Source of the DNA: Blastocladiella emersonii ATCC 22665
Lineage: Eukaryota; Fungi; Blastocladiomycota
DNA: 64,000 bases
Assembly (NCBI GenBank): GCA_025594325.1
Contig: JANHCV010000010.1
Location: 1,178,001-1,242,000 of the forward strand
Direction: 5' to 3'
The translations under genes were made by a program, and so were the position numbers. Under the pieces are notes generated by a model, which was not told the DNA's origin, did not search any database, and worked only from the letters and a program-made list of their open reading frames with translations. Shown in pieces: positions 7,197 through 52,442 of the stretch (the first letter of the stretch is position 1; every line of letters starts with the position of its first letter).

Positions 7197-8999
7197 TCAG
7201 TCCCAATCGGACCCATCCGATTCTCCATCACCACCGTCTTCTTCGTCAGAGCCGTCGTCTGAATTGGGCTCCGAGCCCGACTCGAGGCCGTCGTCCATTG
7301 ACGGAAAATGGACGCCAATGAGCGTGGTGGGTGCCGCATTGAGAATCGCTGCTTCGCCATCGTCAAGGGAGATGCAAGTCCCGTCAAGCAGAAGCTCCTC
7401 AAGGGCCGGTGGAAGGTGCTGAGCGAGGATTCGCGCGCCATCGTCCGTGATATCAATATTGCGTGACAGAATGAGCAAGCGCAGGGTCGTGGGCAGCGCA
7501 GGCGCGAGGAAGGCGACCGCTTCGTCCGTAACATCTGCATCCGCGAGTTCCAGCGACTCGAGGCGGGGCGGCATGCACTGCGCAAGTGCGCGGACCCCGC
7601 GGGTGCCCATAGGGCTCCCGCTAAGGTTCAAGTGGAGCAGCGTATGCGGCAGCCGCCGAAACATGCACGCGGCGACGTGCGGTGACAGATCCGCATCCAT
7701 GAGAATCAACTGCTCAAGCCCAGCAGGAAGGCTCCGCGAAATCGAGCTCAGTAGGGCCGGGGTGAAGCGATCGACGCCGTGCGTCAAGTCGAGAGTCCGA
7801 AGGGTCGCTGGAAGGGCAGCGAGCAAGTACTCGGCGGCGGAGTTCGGTTGAGGGTGATCCGTTATGCGAGCGGACTTGAGGTGCAGCTCCTCGAGGTGGG
7901 GCGGCATCGCGTCGGCCAAGGCGCGCGCACCGTCCGAGCAAAGGAAAGTGGAATTGAGGAAGAGCTTTTTCACCGTCGCGGGGAATGACCAGCGCACAAT
8001 AGATTTCGAGTCACGGTTACCGAGCTTGTTGCCAATCAGGGAGAGCGACTCGAGCGCGGGCGGGAAGTAAGGCCCCATCTCGGCAAGGCCCGCGGCCGTG
8101 AGCTCGTTCTCGTCGAGATTGAGTTCGGTGACTGAATGCGGGAGACTCTTGAGGATGGCAAGAACAAGATGGTCGCCGTACTTGTTGAGTTTGATTTTAA
8201 GCGACTTGAGACCACGCGGCAAACGTTCGAGGAGTCGGGTGCCAAAGTACGCGTCGTGCGAGTTGACCGAAAAGTCGAGCTGCTCAAGCTGGGGCGGCGA
8301 CTGCCAAGAGTCGATCCAGCGCCGGTCAGCGGTTTGGAGAATCCACGAGATGCGGAGGCTAAGCGAAGTCAGCGTCGAGGGGAAGCGGAAGCGAGCAAGC
8401 CGCTCGCAGTCGATCGTGCTACCATCCAGGTTAAGCGAGACGAGGGCCTGGCTGGGGCTCGCCATGGCGGCGTTGAGGGCGTCAATCCCCTTGAGAGTGA
8501 CGGGCTGGAAGCGCACTGCAAGCTCAGTCTGCGTACCGGCAGCGATCGCGCCAACGGATGATAAAATGTCCGAGTCGGCTGGGGTTTTCTCGTTATGGTC
8601 GAAAATGGATAAGCCCAGGGCATTAAGCACATGAGTGTGGACAGCGTGTATCATGAACCTAGAAACCGGAATGTCCGCATCGCGAATCCAATCGATCGTA
8701 CAAAGCGGAGAGCCATTGAGCGTATCGGGCGTGCACTCGATCGGGACACTCAGCGCACGGTATTTGCTCAAAAGCGCGACGTGGCCCGTCCGCATGGCCT
8801 TGTCGGCCGTGTGGTAGCTCGAGTGACGCAAGATGGCCTTGTGCACGCGCGGGATAAGGTTCGCGTGCGTGACGCCGGCGATCTGCTGGAATCCGTCGAG
8901 GTCGTCGCGGCTGAGCGACCACACGGCGAAGCATAAAACGCGTTCAATCAGCTCGGGTATGTTGAGCGTGACGGTCATGTCCGTTTTCATTCGTTTCAT
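7197..8999 (-). CDS. LRR-1: F-box-like/ankyrin-like/RNI-type LRR protein, subfamily A, intronless, acidic tail
   Basis: 600-aa ORF with N-terminal IPELIERVL, about 12 LPxxLxxLxLxxNxI repeats and a C-terminal D/E/S tract ending SDWD. Confidence 0.88.
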   Translation of the reverse strand: MKRMKTDMTVTLNIPELIERVLCFAVWSLSRDDLDGFQQIAGVTHANLIPRVHKAILRHSSYHTADKAMRTGHVALLSKYRALSVPIECTPDTLNGSPLCTIDWIRDADIPVSRFMIHAVHTHVLNALGLSIFDHNEKTPADSDILSSVGAIAAGTQTELAVRFQPVTLKGIDALNAAMASPSQALVSLNLDGSTIDCERLARFRFPSTLTSLSLRISWILQTADRRWIDSWQSPPQLEQLDFSVNSHDAYFGTRLLERLPRGLKSLKIKLNKYGDHLVLAILKSLPHSVTELNLDENELTAAGLAEMGPYFPPALESLSLIGNKLGNRDSKSIVRWSFPATVKKLFLNSTFLCSDGARALADAMPPHLEELHLKSARITDHPQPNSAAEYLLAALPATLRTLDLTHGVDRFTPALLSSISRSLPAGLEQLILMDADLSPHVAACMFRRLPHTLLHLNLSGSPMGTRGVRALAQCMPPRLESLELADADVTDEAVAFLAPALPTTLRLLILSRNIDITDDGARILAQHLPPALEELLLDGTCISLDDGEAAILNAAPTTLIGVHFPSMDDGLESGSEPNSDDGSDEEDGGDGESDGSDWD

Positions 9000-9125
9000 G
9001 TAGTCTGGTAGAGACTAAACCACCCACGAGTGAGGAGAGAGGAAGAGCGCCGCGCGGGCGAGCGAGAGCCGGATATGGGGTGGCGACACGGGCAGCCTCG
9101 CCTGCCACTTCTGTCAAGCCTTGCG

Positions 9126-9147
9126 ATCAGGTGAGTGGCGCGGCGCG
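9126..9147. promoter_or_regulatory. Conserved upstream motif of LRR-1 (ATCAGGTGAGTGGCGCGGCGCG)
   Basis: Near-identical copies at 11482-11503 and 20545-20566, at similar distances from the paralog ATGs, while surrounding sequence diverges. Confidence 0.6.
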
Positions 9148-9550
9148 CTGCAGCCTTTCGTCCCCGTTACTGATTTCTCTTCAGCTTCAAGGCTATTCCT
9201 CGTCACACTGTGAGGTGGTGATGTCGTCGTGGGAGTGCTGGTTGGTTCACATCGTTGCGCATCATTGTTTTCGCTGAGAGCTCGTCGCCATCACACCCTT
9301 TCTCTCTAATCCGCTGTACGAAAGCTGTTTTCATCCCGTCTCAGACTCATAGAAGAGATTAAAAGAAATTAGTTTTGTTCATTGACTGCCGTAGCACGCT
9401 CAGTCACATGCACATGTGATGCTGCCAACAATGCGGCGCCTGGCTCGCCCTTGAGCGTGAATCCAACGGGACTGTCTGTTCTCCAAGATGGGCGAGAGCG
9501 AACACGATACCTTTCAAAGAAAACTGTATAGTTTGTCAAACATTGGGCAC

Positions 9551-11352
9551 CTAGCGGCGCTTCATGCGTACCTGCAGGTCCGTGAGCGATGCGGGCGCCG
9601 CATCACGGATTGCGAGGGCGCCATCGGCTGGTGAGATGCTGGTGAAGTTCAGCAGGAGCGACTCGAGGGCTGGCGGCAAGTGTTCGGCAAGTGTATATGC
9701 GCCCTTGTCCGTAATGCCTTCGTTGTTCGTGAGATCAAGCGAGCGTAGCGTTGCAGGCAGGGCGGGCGCGAGGAGGGCAACTGCATCGTCCGTTAGCCGG
9801 GTGTACTCGAGATCCAGCGTTTCAAGATTGGGCGGCATGCACTGTGCAAGCACACGGAGCCCGTGCGCGCCGATCACGTTTCGCCTGAGTTGAAGGTAGC
9901 GCAATGTGCGCGGCAGTCGCCGAAACATGTAAGCTGCATCCTTTTCTTTCAGGCCTACGGCCGCGAGAGCGAGCCGCTCGAGATTTGGCGGAAGGTTGCG
10001 CGAGAGTAACGCCAAGCATGGAGGGCTGGTGCAGGGATGGATGCAATGTGACAAGTCGAGGTCGCGCAGCGTTGCTGGGAGGGCAGAAATCAAAATCGTG
10101 TCGCCTGGTGCCAAAGTCTTGACAGACCGCATGTGTAGCTTTTCGAGGCTGGGTGGCATTGCATCGGCCAGAGCTCGCATACCGCTGGACGCGAGGTTAA
10201 TGTCATTGAGGACAAGCTCCTTGAGAGTGGCAGGAAGCGCCCAACGAACCGCAGAAGATGAGTCATTGACCCCAAGCCAATTGCCAGTCATAGAGAGCGA
10301 TACAAGCGCGGGCGGGAGATGTAGACACATGTTGGCAAATCCCACGGACGTGATCCGGTTGCTGTCAAGCCCGAGTTCAACCACGGACGGCGGAAGGCTT
10401 TCGAGGATGAACTGGAGCAGTTGATCGCCATATTCGTTGCCGCCAATTTTGAGCGACTTGAGCCCGCGCGGAAGACGCTCAACAAGCCGAGCACCAAAGT
10501 AAGCGTCTTTTGGGTTGCTAGAAAAGTCGAGGTGCTCGAGGTGCGGCGGCCATTGCCAGCTATTGAGCCAACGCCGATCTTTGTCTGAGGAGATCCAGGT
10601 GCAGCTGAGGTTGAGCGTCGTCAACGTCGAGGGAAACCGGAAGTGCGAGAGTCGCTCGCAATCAATCGTGCTGCCGCTCAAGTCCAGCGAGACGAGGGCC
10701 TGGTTGGGGCTCGCCATGGCGGCGTACAGGGCCTCGATCCCCTTGACGGTGACGGGCTGGAAGCGCACTGCAAGCTCAGTCTGCGTGCCAGCAGCGATTG
10801 CGTCAACGGCCGCAAAGATGGCCGAGTCGGCGGAAATGTGTTCGAACGAATCCTATTTGCGGCGAACCAGAGGAGCTTAAGCCGTTACGGTCTGCTTTAG
10901 AGCTCGGGGTGTGGCTTCCGTACCTCGCAACGGCTGCGTTGATTGCCTTCCTCAACTTTGGTGAAGCCGAGAGCAGCCATTACTTTTTGACCAACGAGTT
11001 TGGCCGAGACATGATCGAGATCGATGTCCGAGTCCCGAATCCAATCGAGAGTGCGCAACGGCGAGGCAAGAAGCGTCTCGCTGGAGAACTGGATTGGGAT
11101 GTCGCAGCTGACGAACTTGTCCAGACTCGCAACATGGCCAGCAACCAAAGCTCTATGCATCCTGTAGCGACGGAAGCGGCGCAAGATGGCCTTGTGCACA
11201 CGCGGGATAAGGCGCGGGTGCGTGACGTTGGCGATCTGCCACAAGCCGTAGAAGTCATCCGAGTCGAGCGACCATACCGCGAAGCACAAGATACGCTCGA
11301 TGACCTCGGGTATGTCAAGTACGAGTTGCGTGGCGGTTTGCATTAGCTTCAT
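9551..11352 (-). CDS. LRR-2: subfamily A LRR protein, 2 exons (576 aa)
   Basis: Exon 1 is 11352-10924 (MKLMQT...SRCE), then a phase-0 intron 10923-10853 (GTACGG..ATAG), then exon 2 10852-9551 in frame. Clear paralog of LRR-1 and LRR-4. Confidence 0.88.
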
Positions 11353-11481
11353 GTACGAAGAATTCATCGCGCGGCATAGCAGAGGGGCGAGGGTTGCCGA
11401 GCGACGAGATCGAGGAGCGGTCACAGCGAAGCTCAACCAGCCACACCCGATCGACCTGTCACGCCTATCCAAGCATCTACA

Positions 11482-11503: not shown

Positions 11504-11519
11504 TCCCCTCTACGACGGT

Positions 11520-12751: not shown

Positions 12752-14146
12752 CTAGTTGGCGCGGCAGTAGCCGAGCCCCGAGCCGTCGCTGTCGCTGCTG
12801 TCACCGGCATCCGAATTGTCACTGTCATCGCTGCCAGAGTCACTCGAATCGTCGCAGACTTGTTTCTCGCTAACGGGCAGACCCGTGCGAGCCCACCAGT
12901 TCAGACGCGCGTTGACCTTGGCCGGATCGTCGCCGGGTGCCACGCAGTCCCAAGCTGCTGGGCGAACAAAGTCGCCCTCGGGCAGCAACTCGCGGAACAG
13001 GGCGAGGGCGAGAACGTTGTTGGAAGCACTCGTGCGCTGGATCGCCCGTTCCCAGAACGTGAAGTTGACCTTGGGAATATCAACGGAGAATTCCATGTCG
13101 TTGTTTGATACATTTTGGCAGAACCAGGCTAGAACCTCCTTGTTGCTGGAAGCGGCCGCGTAATCGAGGACGTTGGACCAGAACGCGCGCATGATCTTGA
13201 TCATGGTGTCGTTGTCGTGGCCAATGAAATCGTCGCCCTCGCTGCAGCCGGGGCAGCACGGAGAGCAGTCCATGTACACGTCTTTCGTGATGGCCGTTTC
13301 GGGAAACGAGAGCGATCGACAGACGTCGTAAAAGTTCGGAGTCGAGTAGATCCAGTCGAGCACCTGGATGCGCTTGTTGTTGACCACGTCCTCCAGAATC
13401 AGACCCCAATCGTCAACGAATCTCGCCCAACTCTCGCGCAGGTAAATGTCGTAGTTATCGAGAAGCTCCATGTTCTCGGCCAGCATGGCGAGTGCGGGGA
13501 TGGTGTTGCGGACATCGTCCCATTGCTCGTCAACCTTATCGCAAAACCATTCGACAACCTTGCAATGATTGTGCTCAACGGCATCCTTCATGCAACGCCA
13601 AGTAAACTTGATTTCGAGGTCCGACTCGTCCGACCACCACTCGAGCACCTGGATGTGCCCGCGCGAGCAGGCCTCCTCCACGGTGTCTTCCGTGTACCGG
13701 CCGACGCGAGCGTGCGCCTTGAGCCACTTGAGAACGTCCGCCTGCCCGCACGCAGACGCAATATCGGTCGGGTACGGCTCGGGAAACTTGGCCCAGTCAA
13801 ATCCAACACACTTGTCCAGCAAGTCGAGACGCCCGGCGGAGCTGATCAGGCAAACGTAGAATCCAAGCTGAGCGGGGTCTGAGCAGGGGCGGCGGTGCTC
13901 GATCAAAGTGTCGCGGAGCGCTTTGTGCGACGGGTCGAGAGCACGTTGAACTCGAGGATGCAGAGAGTAGCGGAAAGTAGCGTGGCGGAGCCGACTGAGA
14001 CCAGGAAGGACGCGCAGGAGCGGGAGCGGGTCGGCGCCGCGCGGGTCGAGCTTGACCACACGAATGAGAGTTTCTTCGATGGCATCATAGGGCAAGAAGA
14101 CTCTCCGCCGCATTTGCATGGAGTCGCTGCATGGTATCTGCTTCAT
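12752..14146 (-). CDS. Ankyrin-like repeat protein with an acidic C-terminal tail and no LRRs
   Basis: Repeats such as DIASACGQADVLKWL, EEACSRGHIQVLEWW and KDAVEHNHCKVVEWF. N-terminal LPYDAIEETL..PLPLLRVLP segment and a DSD-rich tail. The start is assigned to MKQIP; the ORF is open to 14311. Confidence 0.75.
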   Translation of the reverse strand: MKQIPCSDSMQMRRRVFLPYDAIEETLIRVVKLDPRGADPLPLLRVLPGLSRLRHATFRYSLHPRVQRALDPSHKALRDTLIEHRRPCSDPAQLGFYVCLISSAGRLDLLDKCVGFDWAKFPEPYPTDIASACGQADVLKWLKAHARVGRYTEDTVEEACSRGHIQVLEWWSDESDLEIKFTWRCMKDAVEHNHCKVVEWFCDKVDEQWDDVRNTIPALAMLAENMELLDNYDIYLRESWARFVDDWGLILEDVVNNKRIQVLDWIYSTPNFYDVCRSLSFPETAITKDVYMDCSPCCPGCSEGDDFIGHDNDTMIKIMRAFWSNVLDYAAASSNKEVLAWFCQNVSNNDMEFSVDIPKVNFTFWERAIQRTSASNNVLALALFRELLPEGDFVRPAAWDCVAPGDDPAKVNARLNWWARTGLPVSEKQVCDDSSDSGSDDSDNSDAGDSSDSDGSGLGYCRAN

Positions 14147-15495: not shown

Positions 15496-16313
15496 TGGAC
15501 TAGGACGACACGCCAGGAGGAACGTAATGAACGTCGTTCACGTTTGCCGCGTGGTTAGTCTGCGTCAGCCAAGTAAGGCAACTGCTGTAGGTAGCAGGAA
15601 CGTCATGGCGGATCCGTTTTGTCCACTCTCACATCATAGCAGCAACGTTTCTGCCGCGCTACTACCAGATACAATATGTCGTGCTACTCAGCAGCTCCGT
15701 GATCGAGTGGAAGATCATATGTCGCGACCCATCTTCGCCGCGCGACGCCATCGTTCTCCAGGCGATTGTTGCTACGTATCATGTCGTGCAGCACGACAAT
15801 AAAGTAATCAAGAATGATTTATATTTCACAGTAACAGCAGCTCCATTTTGCTTCTCATTTGCAGACAGGAACGCGCAAGCCATGGTGCGGTCGCAGACGC
15901 GATGTGGGGGCGACTGAAGCCGGACGGCAGTCAGTGAATGAAATGACACTTGCATAACGTGTAGTAGCAACAGAAAGCATATTTGTGGTGGGTTCACCTT
16001 CCGCACAGAACCGCAAGAGAGGAAGTGTTAGCGCGACCACGCGTTCAGCCACTCACGTAACGTGACAGAAGTGACGAGTCTCCATATGTCACGTGACACA
16101 GACCGAGACTTTCGAAGGGCCACCCAATATTTCAGGGCAAAGCCCTGCACTCCGCCTCGTTGAGTGCTCGAGCACTCACGACCCAACACACGAAACTGGA
16201 TGTGGCATGAGGAATCCGCTGGGCTCCTCCGACACGTCCAAGCGATCAAAACAGCCTGTAATCATACAAAGAAATGAACAAAACGCGAACTCGCAACCAT
16301 TTCGTCAAGTGCC

Positions 16314-18080
16314 TCAGAGTCGATACGTTGTCAGACTCGGCGGAGCAGCGGCTTCGAACGCGGCCTTGCCACTTTCGCTGAGCTTGTTGTCAAAAAGTGT
16401 CAGGAACTCGAGGCGAGGCGGGATGTGCGCAGCAAGCAGCTTTGCGCCAATATCGGTGATGCCGTTCATGTCGAGCTGCAGGGTGAGGAGCGTCGCAGGG
16501 AGAGCAGGCACAAGCTTGGTGAGAGCAGCATCATCGAGGTGCGCCATGCGAAGGTGGAGAGCCTCGAGCTGCGGAGGCATGTGCTTCGCAAGTAGCGCCG
16601 ATCCGGCTAGACCAAGCTCGGCTCCGGAAAGGTTGAGCTGGCGCAGCGTGTGGGGCAGCCGCGGTATGAGTTCCGTGCTACTCGAGGCAGACAAGTTGCT
16701 CAAGTAGAGATCGAGCGTGCTCAGCTGAGCGGGAAGCGCATCGATGAGCGCATGGGCGACTATGTCGTCAAGCTCGACGCGGCAGAGCTCCAGCTCGGTG
16801 ATGGATGGAGGCAGCGACGCAAGAAGGCGCGGCAGCTGGGCAAGGTCGATATGGCTGTGGCCGAGGCCGAGCACTTTGAGGTTTGGTGGGAATGAATCCG
16901 CGAGTGCACGAGCTTCCTCGGCGCCAAACGTGTTGTACTCGGCACTGATTTCGGTCAGTGACACCGGGAAGCTCCAACAAAGCGGCTTGTCTGATTCGTT
17001 GAGCCCGGTATTGCTCAGGTTCAGCGTGAGGAGCGAGGCAGGAAGCATGGGACCGAGAACCGCAAGCCCGATCCCCGAAAAATCATTGTAGCGGAGGTCG
17101 AGCGACGTGAGGCAAGGGGGGAAAAGGAGCGCGAGTGATTCGGCAGCGTCGTCGTCAATTCCGCAGCCCGTGAGCGACAGCGAGGTGAGACTGGGCGGAA
17201 GGCGGGCGAGCACAAGTTCCAGAGCCTCCGAGAAGTCGCTCGAGCTCAGCGTGAGCGACTCGAGTCGCGAGGGCCACGGCATGGGCACAAGTTCGCGAGC
17301 CAAACTGTTGCTCCCGAGCCAGTGTCCATCGAAAGTGGCGGACACGACCGACTCGGGCAGTCGCAGTGCAAGGAGGCGGGGCAGATCGAGCGTACAGCCA
17401 GTGAAGGACACTGAGCGCAAATTTTGGGAGGACGAGGCCATGGCGGCGTTGAGCGTTGCGATACCAGCGGGCGAGATGGCTTCGTTGGTCAGCTCGAGCT
17501 CGGTCAAGTGTCCTTCGGCAACATCAGCTCGCACTGACTCGATGCCTACATCCACAACGGGCGGGGTCGAGTGGCCCTGTGTTCGCGCGCATTCGCAAGT
17601 CGGTTAAGTTCGCCGAGCTTCGTAATACTGAGATGACGAAACACGTACAATCAAGTCGTCGCCGTCGTAAATACTCTCGCCAAGACCGAGCGCGAGGCGG
17701 GCATCGGCCTCAATCTCGTAATCATCGGCCCAGGTCCCGACTTCGTGCAGGGCGAGGGCCCCGGAGTCACGCCACCACTCGAGAGACAACAAGTGACCAC
17801 CGTCAATGGCCTCGTTCAAGGCATCCGTCGAGCACTGAAGCGGCAGGCCAAGCTCGGTCCACTTGTCGAGCACACGGACGTTTCCATTCGCAGTGGCCTC
17901 GTCAAGCGAGAGGACAGGGGAGCGAGAGAGGATCGCTCGCGTTACGCCCGGGGCAAGCTCGTGTCGCGCGACGCGGGCGTACTGCAACAGCCCCGCAACG
18001 TCGTCCGGGTCGGGGTGCAAGTTGATTGCGTGGACAAGGATCCGGTCAAGAATTCGAGGAGCATAAAGCGCAGAGAACAT
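16314..18080 (-). CDS. LRR-3: subfamily B LRR protein, 2 exons (564 aa)
   Basis: Exon 1 is 18080-17649 (MFSALYAPRILDRIL...SLDEATANGNVRVLDKW...LEWWRDSG), then phase-0 intron 17648-17577, then exon 2 17576-16314 with about 12 LRRs. Confidence 0.87.
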
Positions 18081-40023: not shown

Positions 40024-40025
40024 CT

Positions 40026-40034: not shown

Positions 40035-40077
40035 CGTAAAACCCCCTCCGAGCGGTGATTTCTTCCACGACGGCAAA

Positions 40078-41154: not shown

Positions 41155-44100
41155 CGGAGCAGGCCGCGACGTCCTCGAAGCCAAAACCTGCGGATTTGGG
41201 TGGTACAACGGCGATGGCCACGGCGGCCGCCGCCGCGGATAAGATGTCGGTGCCCGCCGACAAGAAGAAAAAAATGAACAAAAAGAAGAAACAAAACATG
41301 AATGATAAGAAGACTAATGGAAAATCTGTTGCTGCGTACTTTGGTGCACTTGTGCGTCTAGAGATGGCGCAGGACCACCTGCACCTCGGCGGGCTCCTCG
41401 CGCATCCAGGGCTCCGCACGGCGCCGATCCCGACGTTCATGATGCTCGACACGGGCGCGCCGGTTAACCTGATCAGCCGCAGGGTGGCCGAGCAGGCCGG
41501 GCTCGTGCCGAAGCGCCTAGCGCGTCGCATCGACCTCCGCGGTGTCGTCGGTTCCGCGCCGGGCCAGCGCCAGTACATCTCGCATTACGTGCACGCGGCC
41601 GTGTCCGTCACGTCGCCCGAGTTCCTGCACGCGGCGGTCGCGGGATCCCAAACCGTGTTCGCGGACGGCGTCGTGCCTCCCGGCGACGCGTCCAAGCAGA
41701 AGCGCGTGGTGGGAGACGCGGGTCGCGCCATCGACATTCCGTGCCTTCATTGCTCGGTCGCGCGCTTCCTCGTCGTCGACTCTCCCGCGTTTCCGGTGAT
41801 CATGGGACTCGAATGGATGGTCGCGAACGGCGCGAAGCCGGATCCGCGCTCGGCCACGGTCGCGATTGACGGCGCGTGCACTGGTCGCTGCGGGTGCCCG
41901 CCCGCCCAGCGCGTCACGGTGGCCACGGTCGCACCGCGCGTCGACCTCGACCCGCTCGCGTGGGACGAGGCACACGGCCCGCCCGAGGCGCCAGATGACG
42001 CGGCGCCGAAGCGCGTGCTGCCCGCCAAGTACCTCAAGTGGGCGCACGTCTTCGATGCCGCCGCGGCGTCCGCGCTCCCGCCGCACCGACCGTACGACTG
42101 CGAGATCGAGCTCGTCGAGGGCGCCAAGGTGCCGTTCCTGCCCGTCTACGCCCTGTCGCAGCCCGAACTCGAGGAGCTGCGCAAGACCATCGACGAGAAC
42201 CTCGCGCGCGGCTTCATCCGCCCATCGCGGTCGCCAGCCGGCGCGCCGATCATGTTCGTGCCCAAGAAGGACGGGTCGCGCCGCATGTGTGTGGACTACC
42301 GCCGCCTCAACGCGCTGACGGTCAAGAACCGCTACGCGCTGCCGCTCATCGCGGAGCTCATGAACCAAGTGCAGGGCGCGCGCATCTTCACCAAGTTCGA
42401 CCTGCGCGGCGCGTACAACCTGGTCCGCATCCGCGAGGGCGACGAGTGGAAGACGGCGTTCCGCACGCGCTACGGACATTATGAATGGATGGTGATGCCG
42501 TTCGGGCTGACCAACGCGCCGGCCGCGTTCCAGGCGTTTGTCAACGACGTGTTCCGCGACCTGCTCGACCGCCGCGGCGTTCTCGTGTACCTGGACGACA
42601 TCCTCATCTTCAGCGAGGACCCCGAAGAGCACACGGCGCTCGTCAAGGAGGTGCTGCAGCGGCTCGCCGACAACAAGCTGTACGTCAAGCTCGAGAAGTG
42701 CGAATTCGACGTGACGCGCGTCGAGTACCTCGGCCACATCCTGACCACCGAGGGCGTCGAGATGGACCCGGCCAAGGTCCGCGCCGTGACCGAGTGGCCC
42801 GCGCCACGGACGGTCAAGGAGGTGCAGGCGTTCCTGGGCCTCGCCAACTACTACCGCCGCTTCATCCCCGAGTTCTCGGAACTGACCATCCCGCTCACCC
42901 GTCTTACGCAGAAGGACACGCCGTGGCGGTGGGGCGACACCGAGGCGGCGGCCTTTGCGGCCATCAAGACGCGGTTCGCGTCCGACCAGTTCCTCGCGCA
43001 CCCCGACCCCTCAAAACAGTTCATTGTCGAGGCCGACGCGTCCAACTTCGCCATTGGGTGCGTCCTGTCGCAGGTCGACAACGAGGGCACGCTGCGGCCG
43101 GTCGCGTTCCACTCGCGCGCGCTCAAGGCGGCGGAGCTGAATTATCCCATCTTGGATAAGGAGCTGCTCGCCATCAAGGTCGCGTTCGAGATCTGGCGCC
43201 ACCACCTCGAGGGCGCGCAGCACCCGGTCGAGGTGTACACGGACCACAAGAACCTCGAGCACTTTCGCACCATGACGGTCGAGTCGCAGCGGCACGCGCG
43301 GTGGGCACTGTTCCTCGAGCGGTTTTCGTTCCGGTTCACGTACCGGCCCGGCGCAATCAACGGGCGCGCCGACGCGCTGTCGCGCCGCGCCGACTACGAG
43401 CTGTTTGACAACCCGATGCTCGGCCGCGCTGTCGTTCCCGCGTCGGCGCTCACGGTGGCCGCCACGGCCGCGGCCAGCGCGCCGCTCGTCGCGGGCACGC
43501 AGGGCGACGACGTGCTCGCCGCGATTCGGGACGGCCTGGCGGAGGACGAGCTCGCGCAGTCGATGCAGCGGAACCCGGGCAAGCACCCGTCGCTCACCAT
43601 GGACCTCGACGGCTTCGTTTGGCGAGACGACCGGCTGTACGTACCGTCAGGCGTCGCGCGCACCCGGGTGATCGAGGAGGCGCACGCGACGCGTGTAGCC
43701 GGTCATTTCGGCGTCCAGCGCACCATCGAGAAGGTGTCGCGCTCGTACTGGTGGCCCGGGATGCGCAAGGTGATCGAGCGGTTCGTCAAGTCGTGCCTCA
43801 CCTGCGCGCGGGCCAAGGTGCCGCGCCACCGGCCTGACGGCGAGCTGCAGCCGCTGCCCACGCCGCCGCGGCCATGGTCGTCGATCTCCATGGACTTCAT
43901 CACGGACCTGCCGCGCAGCAAGGGTCACACCTGCATCATGGTCGTCGTCGATCGGTTCTCCAAGATGACGCACTTCATCCCGCTCGCCGCGCTCCCGACG
44001 GCCGCCACAACCGCCGACGCCTTCATCGAGCACGTGGTGCGGCCGCACGGGCTGCCCGACGACATCGTCTCGGACCGCGGGTCGCAGTTCACGTCGCGGT

Positions 44101-44966
44101 TCTGGTCGGCCATGTGCGAGTCGCTTGAGATCAAGGCCAAGCTCTCGACGGCGTACCACCCGCAGACCGACGGGCAGACCGAGCGCATGAACCAGACCCT
44201 CGAGGTGTACCTGCGCATGTTCGCCAACGAGGACCAGTCGAACTGGGCCGAGCTGCTGCGGTACGCCGAGATGGCCATCAACAACACGGTCAACGAGTCA
44301 ACGGGCATGTCGCCGTTCAAGGCCAACTACGCGTTTGACCCGCGGCTCTCGGCCGCGCCAGTTCGGTCGGATCGGGTCCCGTCAGCCGCCGCGCTGGCCG
44401 AGCGCATTGCCGACGTCCAGGGCAAGCTGCGCGAGAAGGTCGAGCGCGCCAAGGAGCTGTACAAGAAGCACGCTGACCGCCGCCGCCGCGAGGGCCCCGA
44501 CTACAAGGTCGGCGACATGGTGCTGCTGAGCACCAAGAACCTGCGCGTCAACGTGCCCAAGGCCAAGCTCGGGCCCAAGTACACGGAGCCGCTCAAGATC
44601 GTGCGCCTCATCCGGAAATCGGCCGTCGAGCTCGAGCTGCCGCCAACCATGGCGCGCGTCCATCCCGTGTTCCACGTCTCGCTCATCAAGCCGATCGACG
44701 AGCACGACGAGGAGGCGTTCCCGGGCCGCGCGCTGCCGCCGCCAACGCCGTACGCCGTCAACGGGCACGAGGAGTGGACGGTCGAGGCGATCCGCGACGC
44801 GCGCAAGGTCGGCCGCAGCGTCGAGTACCTGCTCAAGTGGCACGGCTGCCCCGAGGACGACAACACCTGGGAGCCGTACGCGAACCTCAAGCACCTCGAG
44901 CTGCTCGCCGAGTTCCACGCGCAGAACCCGTCAAAACCCGACCCGCGGAGGGGGAAGGGGAGATAG
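41106..44966 (+). CDS. pol: Pol polyprotein (protease, RT, RNase H, integrase, chromodomain), -1 frame relative to gag
   Basis: LDTGA; YLDDILIFS; EADASNFAIG..ELLAI..YTDHKNL; HX6H..CX2C and SMDFITDLP..SDRG..QTERMN; EWTVEAIRDAR..EYLLKWHG..DNTWEP. No stops in 1286 codons. Confidence 0.97.
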   Translation: MPVAPALVVGKRQSGVAEQAATSSKPKPADLGGTTAMATAAAAADKMSVPADKKKKMNKKKKQNMNDKKTNGKSVAAYFGALVRLEMAQDHLHLGGLLAHPGLRTAPIPTFMMLDTGAPVNLISRRVAEQAGLVPKRLARRIDLRGVVGSAPGQRQYISHYVHAAVSVTSPEFLHAAVAGSQTVFADGVVPPGDASKQKRVVGDAGRAIDIPCLHCSVARFLVVDSPAFPVIMGLEWMVANGAKPDPRSATVAIDGACTGRCGCPPAQRVTVATVAPRVDLDPLAWDEAHGPPEAPDDAAPKRVLPAKYLKWAHVFDAAAASALPPHRPYDCEIELVEGAKVPFLPVYALSQPELEELRKTIDENLARGFIRPSRSPAGAPIMFVPKKDGSRRMCVDYRRLNALTVKNRYALPLIAELMNQVQGARIFTKFDLRGAYNLVRIREGDEWKTAFRTRYGHYEWMVMPFGLTNAPAAFQAFVNDVFRDLLDRRGVLVYLDDILIFSEDPEEHTALVKEVLQRLADNKLYVKLEKCEFDVTRVEYLGHILTTEGVEMDPAKVRAVTEWPAPRTVKEVQAFLGLANYYRRFIPEFSELTIPLTRLTQKDTPWRWGDTEAAAFAAIKTRFASDQFLAHPDPSKQFIVEADASNFAIGCVLSQVDNEGTLRPVAFHSRALKAAELNYPILDKELLAIKVAFEIWRHHLEGAQHPVEVYTDHKNLEHFRTMTVESQRHARWALFLERFSFRFTYRPGAINGRADALSRRADYELFDNPMLGRAVVPASALTVAATAAASAPLVAGTQGDDVLAAIRDGLAEDELAQSMQRNPGKHPSLTMDLDGFVWRDDRLYVPSGVARTRVIEEAHATRVAGHFGVQRTIEKVSRSYWWPGMRKVIERFVKSCLTCARAKVPRHRPDGELQPLPTPPRPWSSISMDFITDLPRSKGHTCIMVVVDRFSKMTHFIPLAALPTAATTADAFIEHVVRPHGLPDDIVSDRGSQFTSRFWSAMCESLEIKAKLSTAYHPQTDGQTERMNQTLEVYLRMFANEDQSNWAELLRYAEMAINNTVNESTGMSPFKANYAFDPRLSAAPVRSDRVPSAAALAERIADVQGKLREKVERAKELYKKHADRRRREGPDYKVGDMVLLSTKNLRVNVPKAKLGPKYTEPLKIVRLIRKSAVELELPPTMARVHPVFHVSLIKPIDEHDEEAFPGRALPPPTPYAVNGHEEWTVEAIRDARKVGRSVEYLLKWHGCPEDDNTWEPYANLKHLELLAEFHAQNPSKPDPRRGKGR
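41133..41139 (+). promoter_or_regulatory. -1 ribosomal frameshift slippery heptamer G GGA AAC
   Basis: X XXY YYZ pattern in the gag frame, inside the gag/pol overlap (41106-41154). A possible stem CGTAGCGG/CCGCGACG follows about 10 nt downstream. Confidence 0.75.
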
Positions 44967-45140
44967 TGTCACGGTTCAGTGATCCGACGGCTCGGGCTGG
45001 TGGCGCGGGCTGGTGGCGCAGTCCCTCATAAGCCGAGCGTTGCCCTCGCTCTCCCTCTCTCTTGTCATTCGTGATACAATCCTTCATTATCCGGCTAGTC
45101 ATTCCTCGTGGCACAAGACCCTCCCCCTCGGCACCTTACA
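44967..45140 (+). repeat. 3' LTR (174 bp)
   Basis: Identical to the 5' LTR; preceded by PPT GGAGGGGGAAGGGGAGATAG. Confidence 0.97.
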
Positions 45141-46354
45141 ACAACTGCCCGCCAGACGCAGCACTCAGGCTGCCTGCGCAGCTCAACGCGCTTGGCCTAT
45201 TCAACGAGGACTTGACTTTGCCACACTTTGCTCCCAACCTTGGCCATCTGCCGTGCAGTTTGACCATGCTGTACCTCGACCATTGCGCACTCAATGCTGA
45301 GTGCGTCACGCACCTTGCCCGCGGCCTTCCTCCCGCCCTCACATGGTTGACACTCTCCAGTTGCGACTTGGATGATCGTGCTGTTTTTGAACTTTCGCGT
45401 GCCCTACCGCTAAGTCTCACGTACCTTGATTTGAAAGAGAACTCGATTGCTTCGGACGGAGCAATGGCGCTAGGCGAACGACTGCCCCAAGGCTTGGTGA
45501 CCTTGCACCTCAGCAATAATTCCGACATCGGCGTCCATGGCATCCAAGTACTTTGTCAATGCCTCCCTGACTCGGTGGAGGAACTTGATCTCGAATTCTT
45601 GGATGTAAACGAGCTCGCCTTGATTGCCCTGGCCAATCGCGTGCGTCCGTCGCTCAAGCGGCTTCGATTCGGCGGAGCGAATCGCTTTTTCAATGCCCCT
45701 GCCATTGACTTGTCCATGTTGGAAGTCGCTGCGGAACGTCCGGTACCACATGCCTTTCCGGCCCTCAAAGAGTTGGATTTGAACGCATTTCCGTTCGACT
45801 CGAGCTCGAATGTTCAACGGCTTCTTCCCATGTTGGTCGGCCCGTCGATCGAGCGCATTGATATTTCGGCAACTTGCGTCGATGACGATTGTGTCAAGAC
45901 TCTGCTCGAGGTTGCTCCGGCTTCGCTCACCGCGATCCAGTTCTCTGACTGTTCACTGACGGACAAGACGGCCGGGCTTTTCTTTTCTCGTCTGCCACGA
46001 ACAATCTACACGGTCTCTCTCGACCGCAACGACTTTAGCAACGTTGGTTTCATGCTCCTTCTCAACCTTGGGCTTCCGCGCGAGGGATTGCTGAAGTTCA
46101 GGTTCAGGGCTGATGAACTTGGCAGCGCGTTAGTCGAGCTTCATCGGCGCTGCACGAAGGGACATTTCGAAGTCTTTGAGGTTATTTGATCCTGACGATT
46201 GCTTGCAATGTCGATGCAACGCTCTATCATTTCTCGTGTGTACCGTACCTTGCTCCGTTCTTCTTAGCTCAGCTCGCCAATGACGCGTTGCGCCACGAAG
46301 CAATCCAGGCGCGTCATGGGCAAGGTGACAAATACAATGTGTTTCAGTTCCTCG

Positions 46355-47403
46355 TCAAACTGCCGTCCGCCCAATCCCAACCCCCCGCTGATGCTCGAAA
46401 AAGGTGGCCAGCTTGTTGTCAAGTTCCGGGTGCCGCTTGCGCGGCTCCAGGTAGCTGCCGCTGTCGCGCTTGGTCATGACCTTGCTGGTGCCGCTTGTCG
46501 CTGGAGCCGCTGTCGGCTGCATCTCCTTGGCCAGGAACTGGACCAGCTCGGCCTTTTGCGACGCCTGGTCGAGCTGCTGCTGCCACTTGCGGCGGACGTG
46601 GTCGCGGAAGCTCGGATTTTGGGCTACGTACGGAAACCATGGTTAGGCTGCGCTTCCGTGATCTACCGTCGTTAAACGTACCCTTGAGCGTGAGCGCAAT
46701 GTAGAGCAGCGCCGACGCAGTCATGGACATAAACGGGAACTTGGGCCGGACTGTGCCGACGCGGTCGAGTGCGGCCGTGATGGTCTTCTGCATGGTCTTC
46801 TCGAGGAACACGTTGGCCGGCAGCGACGCCAGCGGGACCGGCGCCACGCGTGGCGGGAGCTTCTTGAGCAGCTTCTGGTGCACGAACGGGTCCGGGGTCC
46901 TATGCAATCGACGTGTCAGTACTGGACCAGCATCGGCGCGAACTCGACGACGTACCGCATGAACTCGTGCATCGCCGCCTCGTCCGCCATGGCGTACAGC
47001 TTCCCGCCGTACTGGACCGCACACTCCATGACGCCGTCGACGTGCCCGCGGTCGCGCAGCAGGCGCACGGGGCAGTACCCGAGGAACTCAAACTTTTTCG
47101 GGAATGCCTGCCGCACGAGCTCGGGCGCAATGTGCACGGGCGCGTCATCCGGGTACGCGACGCTCGCGAACCGGTTGGGGTCCGCAACAAACGCCCGCGC
47201 GTGCCCCGCGCTGCATGTCTGGTACACCTTGCCGCGGTACCACACTGCGTGCTCCCACGTCGCGGGGCACACGTCGAACTGGCGCGTCGGCGACGCGAGC
47301 GACACGGGGCAGTACTCGCGCGCAGGGCCGAGCGGCGTCGTCAGCTTGTTGAGCCCCGCGCGGTACACCGGGACGGGCACGCCCGCGACACGGCCGACGA
47401 CGA
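46355..47403 (-). pseudogene. Promoterless duplicate of the AK9-like 3' end (last exons)
   Basis: Reverse complement of 30514-31562. Confidence 0.92.
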
Positions 47404-47404
47404 C

Positions 47405-48549: not shown

Positions 48550-50361
48550 CTAAGCGAGGCGAATCGAGTTAGGGTGCTGCTCCATGAACTCGTCATAAGA
48601 ATCCATCATTTCGTCACTTATGTCCTGTTGCGAGAGCTGGATCACCAGACTACCTTTGCGCGCGACAGCCAGGTTCAAGAGATGCTTGTCGCCGACACTT
48701 GAAAAGAAATTGCGAAGGAGACTCAACCCTTTTACAGAGCCAGGTAAGCGTGTCGCGAACATTTCCGCCGACGCATCGCCAAGGTCGCACTGGTCCATGT
48801 AGATGACTCGAAGGCCGGGCAAGGGGATGGCCAGCAACACCTCGACGCACGCGTCGTTGGCGCAGCATTGATTGAGGTTGAGCACGCGGAGGCACGGGCC
48901 AACAACAAGCGGTATCAGTTTCTGAAGAAGTTCGCTGGATCCGGGTCCTCCAAGGAACCCTTCCAGATCGAGCTCCTCAAGCGACGGAAAAGTGTGGATT
49001 GGCGGAGCTGCTCTTTGGCCACTCGCAACGTTGGAATGCGTGCGTGTACCGTCTCCTCGGAACTTGATAACCTTGAGCGCTGGATGCATGCAGGTTGCAA
49101 AATCAAGAAGAGTCAAAGAGTTTGTCTTCAAGTGTCCTATCTCGATTCGTTCCAGTGATGTAGGAAGCTTTTGCAAGAGCGTTTGGTTGCCGCTCATCGT
49201 GATGATCCCGTTCATTTTAAGAACCAGGGCTTTCAAACCAGCGGGAAGTCGTGCGGCGAGTTCCTCGACCCCCAATGTTGTAAGCATGTTGAAGGTCAGG
49301 TCGAGATCCGTGAGGCTTGGGGGTAACCAAGGGGCAAGTTCTGCAACACCAAGGTCGCCAAGATTGCAACTATGTAGACTGAGCGATTCGAGTGAAGTGG
49401 GAAGCTGTCGCGCAAGGTGCGCAGCGCACGCTAAGTCAAGGGGACACCCACTGAGCGAAATGCTGGTCAAGGCGCGGGGAAGGCAGCGGAAAATGACTGA
49501 AGAATGCGGCAACTCCAAATTGCCGAATGAAATGTACAAGGATGAGAGACCCTCCGGCAATGCTAGAGCTGCATTGGGCGGGCAACGAAACGCGATCCGG
49601 TTCGCATTGAGGGTAAGCGTGGAAAGCGAAGGCGGGAATTCGATCGCTTGAAGCCGAGGGAAGTCAAGATCGACCATGTCCAGGGTCAAGGCGGTGACCG
49701 GTCGATTTGGGACGGATAAGGCACGGTTGAGCTGGCGAATGCCAGCCGCAGCGATACGACCGTTTTTAATCTTGATTTCGGATTCGCCATTCAGGACACT
49801 ATCCACAGCTTCCTGGCACTTGATGTCTCCAGCCGCAAGCTTGCCGCCCGTGACACCGTAAAGGGCAAAGTTGCGGTACGCGCGGGCCTCGTTGAGCCGA
49901 CCATCCAGTTCTGCCAGCTCGGCTGCCTCGTCCCAGTTGTCGGAATAACGCGGGGGAACATCAAGGGGAATGGCGACGTTGAGCGGCAAGTAATCGTACT
50001 TGAGTGGCAGGCCAGAGTCGCGCCAGAAATCGAGAACTCTGTACTGGTCGAAGCTTCCATTAACGTTCAAGGCTGCCTCGGTGTACTCCAAGGGAAGGCC
50101 GTGGGCAACCCGGTAACGCAAAAGCTCGACCTGGCCAGCAACACTTGCATCGTCAACCGAAATAGCTAGGACGCGTTCATTTATAGCTTGGAGTACAAGT
50201 GGAGTGAGAGCCCGCGGAGCGACCCGCAGATAAGGTGTAAGCAAGCGGAGATTGAAGCCCGCCTTGTTGCAATCGTGCAGGCGCACGGCCTCGGCGAGGA
50301 TCTGGTCGATGAGCTCCGGTATAGCAAGTTTTGGTTGATGCATAGAGTTGGAACGTTGCAT
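48550..50361 (-). CDS. LRR-8: subfamily C LRR protein, intronless (about 600 aa)
   Basis: MQRSNSMHQPKLAIPELIDQIL..., ankyrin-like ELLRYRVAHGLPLEYTE..VLDFWRDSGLPLKY segment and about 11 LRRs. ORF is intact. Confidence 0.87.
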   Translation of the reverse strand: MQRSNSMHQPKLAIPELIDQILAEAVRLHDCNKAGFNLRLLTPYLRVAPRALTPLVLQAINERVLAISVDDASVAGQVELLRYRVAHGLPLEYTEAALNVNGSFDQYRVLDFWRDSGLPLKYDYLPLNVAIPLDVPPRYSDNWDEAAELAELDGRLNEARAYRNFALYGVTGGKLAAGDIKCQEAVDSVLNGESEIKIKNGRIAAAGIRQLNRALSVPNRPVTALTLDMVDLDFPRLQAIEFPPSLSTLTLNANRIAFRCPPNAALALPEGLSSLYISFGNLELPHSSVIFRCLPRALTSISLSGCPLDLACAAHLARQLPTSLESLSLHSCNLGDLGVAELAPWLPPSLTDLDLTFNMLTTLGVEELAARLPAGLKALVLKMNGIITMSGNQTLLQKLPTSLERIEIGHLKTNSLTLLDFATCMHPALKVIKFRGDGTRTHSNVASGQRAAPPIHTFPSLEELDLEGFLGGPGSSELLQKLIPLVVGPCLRVLNLNQCCANDACVEVLLAIPLPGLRVIYMDQCDLGDASAEMFATRLPGSVKGLSLLRNFFSSVGDKHLLNLAVARKGSLVIQLSQQDISDEMMDSYDEFMEQHPNSIRLA

Positions 50362-50466
50362 GGTGCCATGAAGGCGAGATACATCGACAGCTCGCGTTCG
50401 GCCCGGGCCGAGCTCAACATCCGCGTGAGGCGGTTCGAGGTTAGCCTTCAAGCCATTCACGCTGCA

Positions 50467-50492
50467 TCACATGATATCCAGTCGCGTCTCAA
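50467..50492. promoter_or_regulatory. Upstream motif of LRR-8 (TCACATGATATCCAGTCGCGTCTCAA)
   Basis: About 106 bp upstream of the ATG; conserved at 52553 and 47516. Confidence 0.6.
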
Positions 50493-50614
50493 AAGCCTAC
50501 GGAGACGCAAGGGTCTAATGCAGGCAAAATTAATGTAAAACACCCTATTAAATATATGCACATGAGAAAATCGACAAGCTCGCGTGAGGCAGACGGCTCA
50601 GTGGACGTTGTCCA

Positions 50615-52442
50615 TCACGCAATGTCAAACGCGTCCGGGTACGGGCACTCCTCAAAGAGCTCCACCAGCTCTTCATCTAGATCTTGGTCCTCGACTCTAA
50701 TCGTCAGCGCTCCCTCGCGTGCAACTCCGAGTTCGAGGAGCAGCTTGAACCCGTCCTCGCTAAACTCGATGCCACCGAGGTCGAGATGAGTGACCGTTTC
50801 CGGGAGCCGCGCTAAGAAAAGCTCCGCTGCTTCGTCCGTAAGGTCGCAGTTCAGCAAATTGATGGTCTTGAGCGTCGGCGGGGCAACGTCGAGGAGGGCG
50901 GCGACACAGGCGTCGTCAACACAAGTGTCGCGAAGCTCGAGAGTAGCGAGCCGCGGGCCAACAAGCAAAGGCAGGAGGATTCGAGCGCTGGCGCTGAAAT
51001 CGAACGGATACACGTTCAAATACAGCTCCTCGAGAGCAGGAAACGCGTGTTGTTCTGGCTGCACAGTGACTTCCGTCAGAGAAGACAGATCAACGCGAGG
51101 AGTAACGTATGAACCTCGGCGTTCGCCGCTGAATTGGAGGTACTTGAGCGACGGCCATGGGCGCTTCGCCAACACGAGAAATGCAAGCGCGTTCACGTCC
51201 AAGTCCTCGAGTTCAAGTCGCTCCAACGAGTCGGGGAGGTGCTGGAAGAGGGCTTCGAGACCGCTCGAGTCAAGCTCCTTGTTGTTGCTGAGAACCAGCG
51301 TGGTGAGGCCTCGAGGCAGTCCCTTGCCCAGCTTCGTCATTTCAGCCGAAGTAATCCAGTTTCCTGGCAGCGAGAGCGTCTTGAGGCTCGGTGGAAAGTG
51401 CTGCGAAAGCGTCGCGATATCGTCGTCGTCCACTTGGCACTCTTTCAGGGTAAGCGACTCGAGTCCTGGCGGAAGCCCGCGGGCGAGATGCGCGATTTCG
51501 TCCGTGTGAAGCTCACACGAGTCGAAGGTAAGATACGTCAAGGCGCGAGGAAGTCGCTCCAAGTTGGGCGCAAAGTTGGGCAGTGTCAAATCCTCCTTGA
51601 CGATGCGAAGCGAGGAAAGCGTGTCGGACAGCGCAAGCGTCATGTCGGGCGAGCATCGATCGTCAATACGGTTGTTGACCAGGGTGAGCGACGAGAGTGA
51701 AGGCGCAAGTTTGAGAGCGCAGAGGCAACGAAAGTCGAGATCGACCGTGTCGAGCGTGAGCGTGAGCGAGTCGATAACAAGCCCAGGCTGAGCAAAGACC
51801 TTGTTGAGCTGCTGGATGCCGGCCAATGAGATGCGCTGCTTGGAGATTGCAATCTTGGTCTCGCCGTCCATGAGTTTGGAAAGAACTTGCGCGCAGCGGC
51901 ATCGCCAGCCGCAACCTTGGCCCCTGTCACAACCCCAGCACGAGCATACTCGCGAAACTGACGAGCCTCGTCCAGCTTGCCGTCGTGCTCCGCTTGGTCC
52001 GCCGCTGCACCCCAGTCGTCACGGAAGCTTCCGCTGGGCACGCCGAGCAGGACAGCGGCATACTCTTTTAAGAAACCGTACTTGAGCGGGAGTCCCGAGT
52101 CGCGCCAGAACTCGAGAGCCGCGTAGTGGCGGCGATCATGCGCGCGTTTGAGCGCGGCCTCGGTGTACTTCATGGGCAGGCCGAAGGCGACACGGAGGCG
52201 GAGCAGCTCGACTCGGTTGGCGCCGCTCGCGTCGTCCACGGACACGGCAAGGACGTGTCGCTCAACGACATCGTATGTGCGAGGGATGAGAGCGCGTGGC
52301 GCGACCTGGAGATAAGGAGCAAGAAGTCGGAAGTCGAAGCTCGCGTCGTCGAGATCGTGGAGTGCACGACCTCGACGAGGATCCGGTCGATCAGGGCCGG
52401 TACGGCGAGATTGGGTTGATGCATGGAGTCTAGACGTTGCAT
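50615..52442 (-). pseudogene. LRR-9: subfamily C LRR gene with two 1-nt deletions
   Basis: Comparison with LRR-8 requires frameshifts at about 52364 (VV-LHD) and about 51898 (GD-RCAQ). The LRR region 51871-50615 is still open. Confidence 0.8.

Follow-up and report, generated by a model that had tools for sequence, protein, structure and literature searches.

A tandem family of head–ankyrin–LRR genes in Blastocladiella emersonii and its candidate role as modular interaction adaptors

INTRODUCTION

Leucine-rich repeat (LRR) proteins related in form to those described here include the FBXL-type receptors of the Skp1–cullin–F-box (SCF) ubiquitin ligase (Skp2, FBXL2/17, yeast Grr1 and plant TIR1/COI1), the GALA/RipG type III effectors of Ralstonia, which combine an F-box with GALA-LRRs (PMC13243912), and the ribonuclease inhibitor and NLR (NLRC3, NLRP) families. 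F-box/BTB + LRR expansions of the Parachlamydiaceae and F-box + ankyrin proteins (Legionella AnkB, poxvirus ANK/PRANC) have also been described (PMC4209131, PMC9414399). We analysed a stretch of 64,000 nucleotides (nt) of the zoosporic fungus Blastocladiella emersonii ATCC 22665 (contig JANHCV010000010.1, positions 1,178,001 to 1,242,000, forward strand; hereafter the window), in which tblastn with the intact proteins located nine paralogous LRR loci at 7.2–52.5 kb, together with one LRR-less ankyrin relative. The encoded proteins share a three-helix head, two ankyrin repeats and an LRR horseshoe. The reading that we favour, with a probability of roughly 0.4, is that of a modular adaptor, in which an invariant head–ankyrin module docks one common partner, most probably Skp1 of the SCF complex, and the LRR part recruits varied targets.

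FBXL-type receptors resemble the array proteins in being soluble, in placing an N-terminal helical module before an LRR solenoid and in an LRR unit of ~26 residues, which in length belongs to the cysteine-containing (CC) class; the best structural matches of an array protein include COI1, FBXL17, FBXL2 and FBXL13. The array proteins differ in that their heads, putative Skp1 binders, contain no F-box detectable by profile or fold, in that two ankyrin repeats and a linker lie between head and LRRs, and in that an invariant LP stands where the CC unit has its Cys residues.

The GALA/RipG effectors, likewise a multigene family, follow a similar idea, with an F-box-like head set before a variable LRR body, and have GAxxLA in the LRR helix as the array proteins do; the RipG4 LRR domain was the best-covered structural match (template modelling score by target 0.75, 22% identity). 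They are, however, effectors secreted by bacteria, their units have 24 residues and Pfam detects their F-box, whereas the array genes are eukaryotic, with spliceosomal introns, 26-residue units and an ankyrin insert. Nothing points to horizontal transfer; the similarity lies only in the structure and the GAxxLA motif.

The LRR domains of ribonuclease inhibitor and NLR proteins share with the array the alpha/beta horseshoe, its helical convex side and the Pfam family LRR_6, and they gave the top Foldseek E-values (4e-15 to 1e-13; RNH1 4e-15). In contrast to the 26-residue units of the array, their units alternate between 28 and 29 residues. Unlike NLR/STAND proteins, the array proteins carry neither NACHT nor NB-ARC and give no evidence of ligand-driven diversification.

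True homologues of the head–ankyrin module are found in 'VLEWW' ankyrin proteins of zoosporic fungi (for example Zopfochytrium KAI9348936, Rhizophlyctis KAJ3042838 and Catenaria ORZ31981; profile E 1e-23 to 1e-50). These are uncharacterized proteins, of which the ankyrin-only gene of the window is a member, and they differ from the array proteins in having 4–9 further ankyrin pairs in place of LRRs. The parachlamydial, Legionella and poxvirus families resemble the array in their modular logic, being large lineage-specific expansions of a cullin-adaptor motif set on LRR or ankyrin bodies. Their F-box is detectable by profile and their binding to the ubiquitin ligase has been demonstrated, whereas in the array both the F-box and such binding are putative; moreover, the F-box is C-terminal in poxviruses, as opposed to the N-terminal head of the array.

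ORGANIZATION OF THE ARRAY

An earlier reading of these letters without database searches (the sequence-only reading) had described nine paralogs in about 45 kb, and the tblastn results agree. A further search with 153 family proteins found no additional family copy in the spacers. The loci and the elements associated with them are listed below in window coordinates.

LRR-1, 7197–8999, minus strand: subfamily A, intact, single exon, 600 amino acids (aa), acidic C-terminal tail (open reading frame and translation).
LRR-2, 9551–11367, minus strand: subfamily A, intact, two exons, 581 aa.
LRR-2 structure, minus strand: exon 1 11367–10924; intron 10923–10853 (71 nt, GTACGG..ATAG); exon 2 10852–9551.
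Ankyrin-only relative, 12752–14146, minus strand: same N-terminal head, then ~8 'VLEWW'-type ankyrin repeats and an acidic tail.
LRR-3, 16314–18080, minus strand: subfamily B, intact, two exons, 564 aa.
LRR-3 structure, minus strand: exon 1 18080–17649; intron 17648–17577 (72 nt); exon 2 17576–16314.
LRR-4, 18614–20383, minus strand: subfamily A, intact, two exons, 566 aa; the same gene as NCBI H9P43_007862.
LRR-4 intron, 19975–19907, minus strand: 69 nt, with TACTAAC.
LRR-5, 24624–26294 (N-terminal and central parts, with frame changes) and 20657–21325 (C-terminal LRR remnant), minus strand: subfamily B pseudogene.
PIF/Harbinger element within LRR-5, 21352–24603.
LRR-6, 31728–33503, minus strand: subfamily C, intact, single exon, 591 aa.
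LRR-7, 39097–39849 and 45141–46186, plus strand: subfamily C, inverted copy of LRR-6, split after ~codon 250.
Chromovirus within LRR-7, 39850–45140, plus strand.
LRR-8, 48550–50361, minus strand: subfamily C, intact, single exon, 603 aa.
LRR-9, 50615–52455, minus strand: subfamily C pseudogene, two frameshifts.
Inverted duplication, 30514–47403, around a 4.4-kb spacer.

The three subfamilies proposed earlier were recovered both from the protein identities (A, LRR-1/2/4, 57–63%; B, LRR-3/5, 49%; C, LRR-6/7/8/9, 42–100%) and from the tree, in which LRR-1/2/4 group together (99/99), as do LRR-6/8 (100/100), each clade being sister to genes on other contigs.

Six copies are intact. LRR-1, LRR-6 and LRR-8 are single open reading frames; LRR-2, LRR-3 and LRR-4 require removal of one intron each (71, 72 and 69 nt), after which frames of 581, 564 and 566 codons, respectively, are open. 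The sequence-only reading had counted five intact and three inactivated copies; the three inactivated copies stand, and the intact copies number six, LRR-2, LRR-3 and LRR-4 among them only once these introns are taken out. All three introns have the form GTACG...AG, are in phase 0 and lie at the same place, the boundary between the head/ankyrin module and the LRR part, and splice sites, branch point and intron phase are conserved across the three genes. LRR-1 lacks the intron found in LRR-2 and LRR-4.

The shortened tail noted earlier for LRR-4 was also verified. Past its TAG codon (18614–18616), 45 in-frame acidic codons continue to 18479, ending in ...SPDWE, and are followed by a second TAG at 18476–18478; LRR-1 has the homologous sequence as its acidic tail (...SDGSDWD). 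The early TAG has the look of either a nonsense mutation of recent origin or a codon that is read through. An acidic Ser/Asp tail also closes the ankyrin-only gene.

PROTEIN ARCHITECTURE

AlphaFold2 models (predicted local distance difference test, pLDDT, 84–87) gave one architecture for the family: a three-helix head, two ankyrin repeats and 11–15 LRRs, with a variable linker that precedes the LRR horseshoe and carries the phase-0 intron in subfamilies A and B. The head motif reads L-x-x-P-E-[LI]-I-E-R-[IV]-L ... Y-A-R-V ... P-x-V-x-x-A-I-L. The first exon of LRR-3 (144 aa), modelled with 36 aligned relatives, reached pLDDT >94 at residues 5–110, with helices at 4–20, 28–37 and 44–53 followed by two helix-turn-helix units.

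Residues 58–136 of this model superposed on many ankyrin domains (Z 5.0–5.5, root-mean-square deviation (rmsd) 2–3.3 Å). Pfam Ank_4 was matched by homologues of the module (1e-17 to 1e-26) and by the ankyrin-only gene of the window (5e-5), but Pfam ankyrin matches were not significant in the LRR genes themselves (12 N-termini). Because the relatives of the module are long ankyrin proteins with significant Ank_4 matches, the units previously called ankyrin-like are, by fold and by homologue profile, two true ankyrin repeats, of a 'VLEWW' subtype widespread in zoosporic fungi.

The full-length model of LRR-1 (pLDDT 86.6, predicted template modelling score 0.81) contains 15 strand–helix units, and Pfam LRR_6 exceeded its gathering score in every copy tested (25–81 bits against a cut-off of 23.4; LRR-1 at 1.7e-12). 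The unit was 26 residues long in 41 of 69 intervals, with the consensus LPPsLexLxLxxNxLxDxGAaxLAxx, and is closer to the CC/GALA type than to the classical 28/29-residue ribonuclease inhibitor type. Tandem LRRs had been recognized from the sequence alone, but their number had been given as 11–12 instead of 11–15 and their class as the RNI type instead of a 26-residue unit. The structural neighbours of the LRR part (ribonuclease inhibitor, NLRP/NLRC LRR domains, RipG4, COI1 and FBXL17/2) reveal the LRR class, not the function.

Pfam found no NACHT, NB-ARC or any P-loop NTPase, no signalling or death domain and no further domain besides the LRRs in any copy, and the two models show only a helical module and an LRR solenoid, no dedicated signal-peptide or transmembrane predictor having been run. 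These results agree with the earlier description of soluble repeat proteins lacking a NOD domain.

DISTRIBUTION OF THE FAMILY

The head is the part of the protein that is best conserved, and the head–ankyrin module is common to LRR proteins and ankyrin-only proteins, in the window as in the genome. A profile of the N-terminal module retrieved 1200 representative clusters at E ≤0.001 and 570 at E ≤1e-10. Most of the 1200 match positions 58–115 five to nine times and are therefore long ankyrin proteins. Those relatives that were looked up (Zopfochytrium, Rhizophlyctis, Nowakowskiella, Geranomyces, Cladochytrium, Catenaria, B. britannica and B. emersonii) all came from the Chytridiomycota and Blastocladiomycota and were all labelled 'hypothetical proteins'. 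The searches made here revealed the fusion to LRRs in Blastocladiella alone, apart from distant copies in Allomyces.

A homologous-protein search with LRR-6 returned zero matches, its candidate list probably being swamped by LRR words, and a search with the head of a chytrid relative (P0035) returned only that protein itself. Language-model neighbours of the head all scored ≤0.82 and serve as leads only. The family is mentioned neither in the B. emersonii genome paper (PMC9730499) nor in the literature matched by full-text searches. It is lineage-specific and undescribed in the literature searched, and the head–ankyrin–LRR combination is new.

Early-diverging fungi are poorly annotated, and B. 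emersonii is under development as a cell-biology model. With ~1200 clusters among zoosporic fungi, a conserved docking head on interchangeable ankyrin and LRR bodies would amount to a lineage-specific system of protein interactions on a major scale and, should the head bind Skp1, to a large hidden class of E3 substrate receptors.

A PROPOSED MODULAR ADAPTOR AND THE NATURE OF THE HEAD

The adaptor reading builds on what the data show: the architecture of the proteins, how the family is related, its purifying selection and the ways in which copies are born and lost. According to this reading, the array would encode soluble modular protein–protein-interaction adaptors of a family expanded in Blastocladiella. 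We infer that the head–ankyrin module docks every paralog to one common cellular partner, most probably Skp1 of the SCF ubiquitin ligase, in which case the head would be a very divergent F-box; the coupling to SCF is plausible. The divergent LRR solenoid would recruit differing target proteins. The family grows through tandem duplication of neighbouring copies, through gene conversion and through transfer of the head/ankyrin exon between LRR and ankyrin bodies, and copies are lost through insertion of transposable elements (TEs) and frameshifts.

Several properties of the head and its surroundings are consistent with an F-box. The head is N-terminal, and its helix 1, with LPxE#xxIL, is the best conserved element across two phyla, more so than the ankyrin repeats. 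Helices 2 and 3 are joined by a 6-residue loop, and helix 3 is not followed by a beta-hairpin loop, which distinguishes this part from the two canonical repeats behind it. LRRs of the 26-residue GAxxLA (CC/GALA) class are usual behind F-boxes, and RipG4, COI1, FBXL17 and FBXL2 are among the best LRR structural matches. In UniRef, the Allomyces homologues P0006 and P0007 are named 'F-box domain-containing', as are neighbours from Catenaria and Allomyces in the AlphaFold database (AFDB). Among 143 wider relatives, the first 90 residues gave F-box-like matches in five and F-box matches in four, with a best E of 7e-5.

Other results weigh against the adaptor reading or its F-box component. No match to Pfam F-box or F-box-like (PF00646/PF12937) was obtained at E up to 10 with 12 N-termini and three family consensus sequences, nor any Pfam F-box match at E 0.1–1 with whole proteins, and no F-box protein came up in PDB profile searches, whether the query was the whole N-terminal module or only the head. 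The F-box matches of the chytrid relatives that were inspected fall below threshold (22.9 bits at best, with a cut-off of 24.3) and extend over no more than helix 1, profile positions 1–27. Searches with the N-terminal model in Foldseek PDB, VIA-align wide, AFDB clusters and Atlas returned only ankyrin or unrelated helical proteins, a domain of 40–50 residues being at the limit of the fold searches used; several of the alignments start at residue 13–30 and take helices 2–3 as an extra ankyrin repeat. The head also lacks the conserved Trp of F-box helix 3. At the level of the genes, LRR-2 and LRR-3 were not called by NCBI (window 8614–30383), and the low GC content at third codon positions (GC3) of the LRR genes suggests weak expression.

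The F-box-like N-terminus of the sequence-only reading could, therefore, not be confirmed: neither Pfam nor PDB profiles nor any of the four fold searches gave an F-box, and the AlphaFold check that it had proposed yielded three confident helices, for which the fold searches returned ankyrin proteins and no F-box chain. In Swiss-Prot, alignments to FBXL13, FBL3 and COI1 include the N-terminus, at an rmsd >25 Å. That the head is a true Skp1-binding F-box is rather less likely than not.

It is also possible that the head consists of a capping helix at the N-terminus and one degenerate ankyrin repeat, giving a three-repeat stack on the LRR part and a two-surface scaffold or regulator unrelated to ubiquitin ligases, with the expansion reflecting neutral or ecological diversification of binding partners. 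Such a head would explain why every N-terminal fold search gives ankyrin proteins, with helices 2–3 superposing on an ankyrin repeat in the many alignments that begin at residue 13–30, why the F-box signal is absent from Pfam and PDB profiles and why the closest relatives of the module are long pure ankyrin proteins. It fits less well with the 6-residue loop between helices 2 and 3 and the missing hairpin after helix 3, which set this unit apart from canonical repeats, with a helix 1 conserved across phyla better than the ankyrin repeats, which is unusual for a mere cap, or with the few relatives that come near the F-box-like threshold.

A bolder form of the adaptor reading, in which the head represents a cryptic, highly divergent F-box class, missed by present profiles, that marks >1000 ankyrin/LRR proteins of the Chytridiomycota and Blastocladiomycota and whose head/ankyrin exon was shuffled onto the LRR part in Blastocladiella to give an architecture without a described counterpart, appears rather unlikely. 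If it were true, zoosporic fungi would own a very large unrecognized repertoire of SCF substrate receptors, which might serve foreign-protein surveillance.

SELECTION AND TURNOVER

Selection was assessed by pairwise ratios of nonsynonymous to synonymous divergence (dN/dS) and by positional entropy. dS was 0.55–1.4 within subfamily A, saturated between LRR-6 and LRR-8, and 0.55 to >2 for most paralogs, so that most duplications are old; young events are limited to the LRR-6/7 duplication and the insertion of the two TEs. The rapid turnover claimed for the array is, thus, true of these events, but not of most paralogs.

dN/dS was 0.20–0.23 in the LRR part outside the strand face, 0.32–0.43 in the N-terminal part and 0.34–0.78 at the xxLxLxx positions of the face (within-subfamily, unsaturated pairs). 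It remained below 1 everywhere but at the exposed positions of LRR-1/LRR-3 (1.06), a saturated cross-subfamily pair (dS ~1.8) that carries no weight. The family is under long-term purifying selection, which is evidence of function. In six subfamily-A proteins, mean positional entropy was 1.32 bits for the face and 1.20 bits for the remaining non-scaffold positions (Mann–Whitney p=0.12). Hypervariability of the strand face, apparent in a crude partition, was rejected, since it was not significant once scaffold residues were removed. The binding face shows nothing that would specifically indicate diversifying selection, and the diversifying receptor envisaged by the sequence-only reading finds no counterpart in these values.

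These tests bear directly on the proposal that the array encodes NOD-less cytosolic surveillance receptors, similar to those of innate immunity, whose LRR faces diversify in response to parasites or viruses and which may or may not be coupled to SCF. The genomic style would suit such receptors: the tandem arrays contain pseudogenes and TEs, show gene conversion and occupy low-GC3 islands flanked by housekeeping genes. RNH1 and NLR LRR domains are the closest matches to the LRR fold, and dN/dS at xxLxLxx positions is 1.5–3.5 times that of the rest of the LRR part. Nevertheless, dN/dS stays below 1 in the unsaturated within-subfamily pairs, the excess at the face vanishes without scaffold residues, most paralogs are old, signalling or death domains and an NTPase are absent, and the P-loop gene embedded in the array is adenylate-kinase-like, not STAND. 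We consider this explanation improbable, and an immune or antiviral function is speculation with support limited to genomic style. Because the immune-receptor idea is not supported on present evidence, the finding is of moderate interest.

Gene conversion was evident between the heads of LRR-1 and LRR-4 (8799–8978 and 20204–20383), which are 97–99% identical in nucleotide sequence over the first ~65 codons, compared with 53–83% elsewhere, and LRR-1 is 90% identical to LRR-2 over codons 151–180. These near-identical tracts, one shared with the LRR-4 head and one with LRR-2, make LRR-1 a mosaic. Shuffling of the head/ankyrin exon, with intron loss in LRR-1, fits the data because the module is shared with the ankyrin-only gene and the boundary intron is kept in subfamilies A and B.

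Birth-and-death evolution is seen in the nine loci, three of them disabled, in one 100% identical duplicate, in two TE insertions and in the monophyletic local clades; the picture of a tandem, lineage-specific family with pseudogenes and two different TEs was, in this respect, sound. The array is a clean example of domain-boundary introns, intron loss, gene conversion and TE-driven gene death.

INACTIVATED COPIES AND TRANSPOSABLE ELEMENTS

The inactivation of copies by two different TEs and by frameshifts, inferred from the sequence alone, was substantiated at LRR-5, LRR-7 and LRR-9. LRR-5, detected by tblastn with LRR-3 (49% identity), contains two frame changes and is cut by a 3.25-kb PIF/Harbinger element. 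The latter is bounded by 16-nt terminal inverted repeats with the sequence AGGGCCCGTTTGGTTC and carries a DDE_Tnp_4 transposase (23501–24382, minus strand) and a Myb_DNA-bind_3 (Myb/SANT-like) frame (21623–22751, plus strand). Because both of these reading frames are open, the element may still be active.

LRR-7, a copy of LRR-6 with 100% DNA identity, lies inside an inverted duplication of 3.6 kb and is interrupted by a 5.3-kb Ty3/gypsy chromovirus with 174-nt long terminal repeats that are 100% identical, a gag with zf-CCHC, a 1286-aa pol (protease, reverse transcriptase, RNaseH, integrase and chromodomain) and a target duplication of ~5 bp. The inverted arms (30514–34129 against 38492–39851 plus 45141–47403) are 100% complementary, the chromovirus being the sole difference. 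Judging from the sequence, the inverted duplication would either have arisen extremely recently or reflect an assembly in which two haplotypes, one with the chromovirus, were folded back on each other. LRR-9 contains one frameshift near 52360, in the head, and one near 51900–51920, in the linker, and no intron signals were found at either point.

That the array is mostly non-functional debris, a decaying and poorly expressed family that duplication and conversion maintain in a TE-rich island, with an inverted duplication that is an assembly artefact, is very improbable, for although three of the nine copies are dead, GC3 is low, NCBI called LRR-4 properly, LRR-1 as a fragment and LRR-2 and LRR-3 not at all, and the 3.6-kb arms, 100% identical apart from the TE, could be folded-back haplotypes, six reading frames of 564–603 codons remain open despite dS ≥0.55, dN/dS of 0.2–0.4 indicates long-term purifying selection, splice sites, branch point and intron phase are conserved in three genes, and the models fold with high confidence.

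ANNOTATION AND READ DATA

In the NCBI annotation of window 8614–30383, LRR-4 is called and LRR-1 is present only as a 204-aa fragment (P0060). The LRR-4 gene, H9P43_007862 (P0001), matches window 20383–18617 at 100% over its exons, and its NCBI model uses the same donor as the intron predicted here, with an acceptor 12 nt further on. The ankyrin-only gene is annotated as a 362-aa Ank_4 gene. On other B. emersonii contigs, two gene models, P0076 (KAI9156014) and P0143 (KAI9168245), join family members to unrelated genes: one combines a fatty-acid-synthase fragment with head–ankyrin–LRR, and another NPR3 with head–ankyrin–LRR. These fusions are probably merged neighbouring genes and show the family to be poorly annotated.

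Four sequencing runs of one sample contain the locus. They are genomic, because their contigs cross both introns unspliced. The contig of LRR-3 (16286–17834) has about twice the word depth of its neighbours in three genomic runs (84 against 46; 306 against 155). Several contigs diverge in this region, at 16408, 16581 and 17388, and a 130-nt skip (16431–16562) occurs at half depth. Depth and contig divergence together suggest a second near-identical copy, or an allele, elsewhere. Apparent allelic differences at 20285–20336 were rejected as such, since they fit the 97–99% identical head of LRR-1 mapping onto LRR-4.

GENOMIC SETTING

Housekeeping genes flank the array, with two P-type ATPase genes at 0.1–5.4 kb and a carnitine acyltransferase at 55.7–57.8 kb. 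The GC content of the array is 0.54–0.62, compared with 0.68–0.73 in the flanks, and GC3 is 0.61–0.77 in the LRR genes, compared with 0.91–0.96 in the flanking genes.

A multi-exon, GC-rich and unrelated gene lies inside the array on the plus strand (26638–30383 and beyond; annotated as 1438 aa) and divides subfamilies A and B from subfamily C. It encodes an adenylate-kinase-like P-loop (AAA_17/ADK) with a weak, sub-threshold Pfam YHS match, and a STAND NTPase identity for this gene was rejected on the basis of that P-loop. In the left flank, the P-type cation ATPase reading frames (83–5423, plus strand) lie in tandem and could represent either one gene with an intron or a tandem pair.

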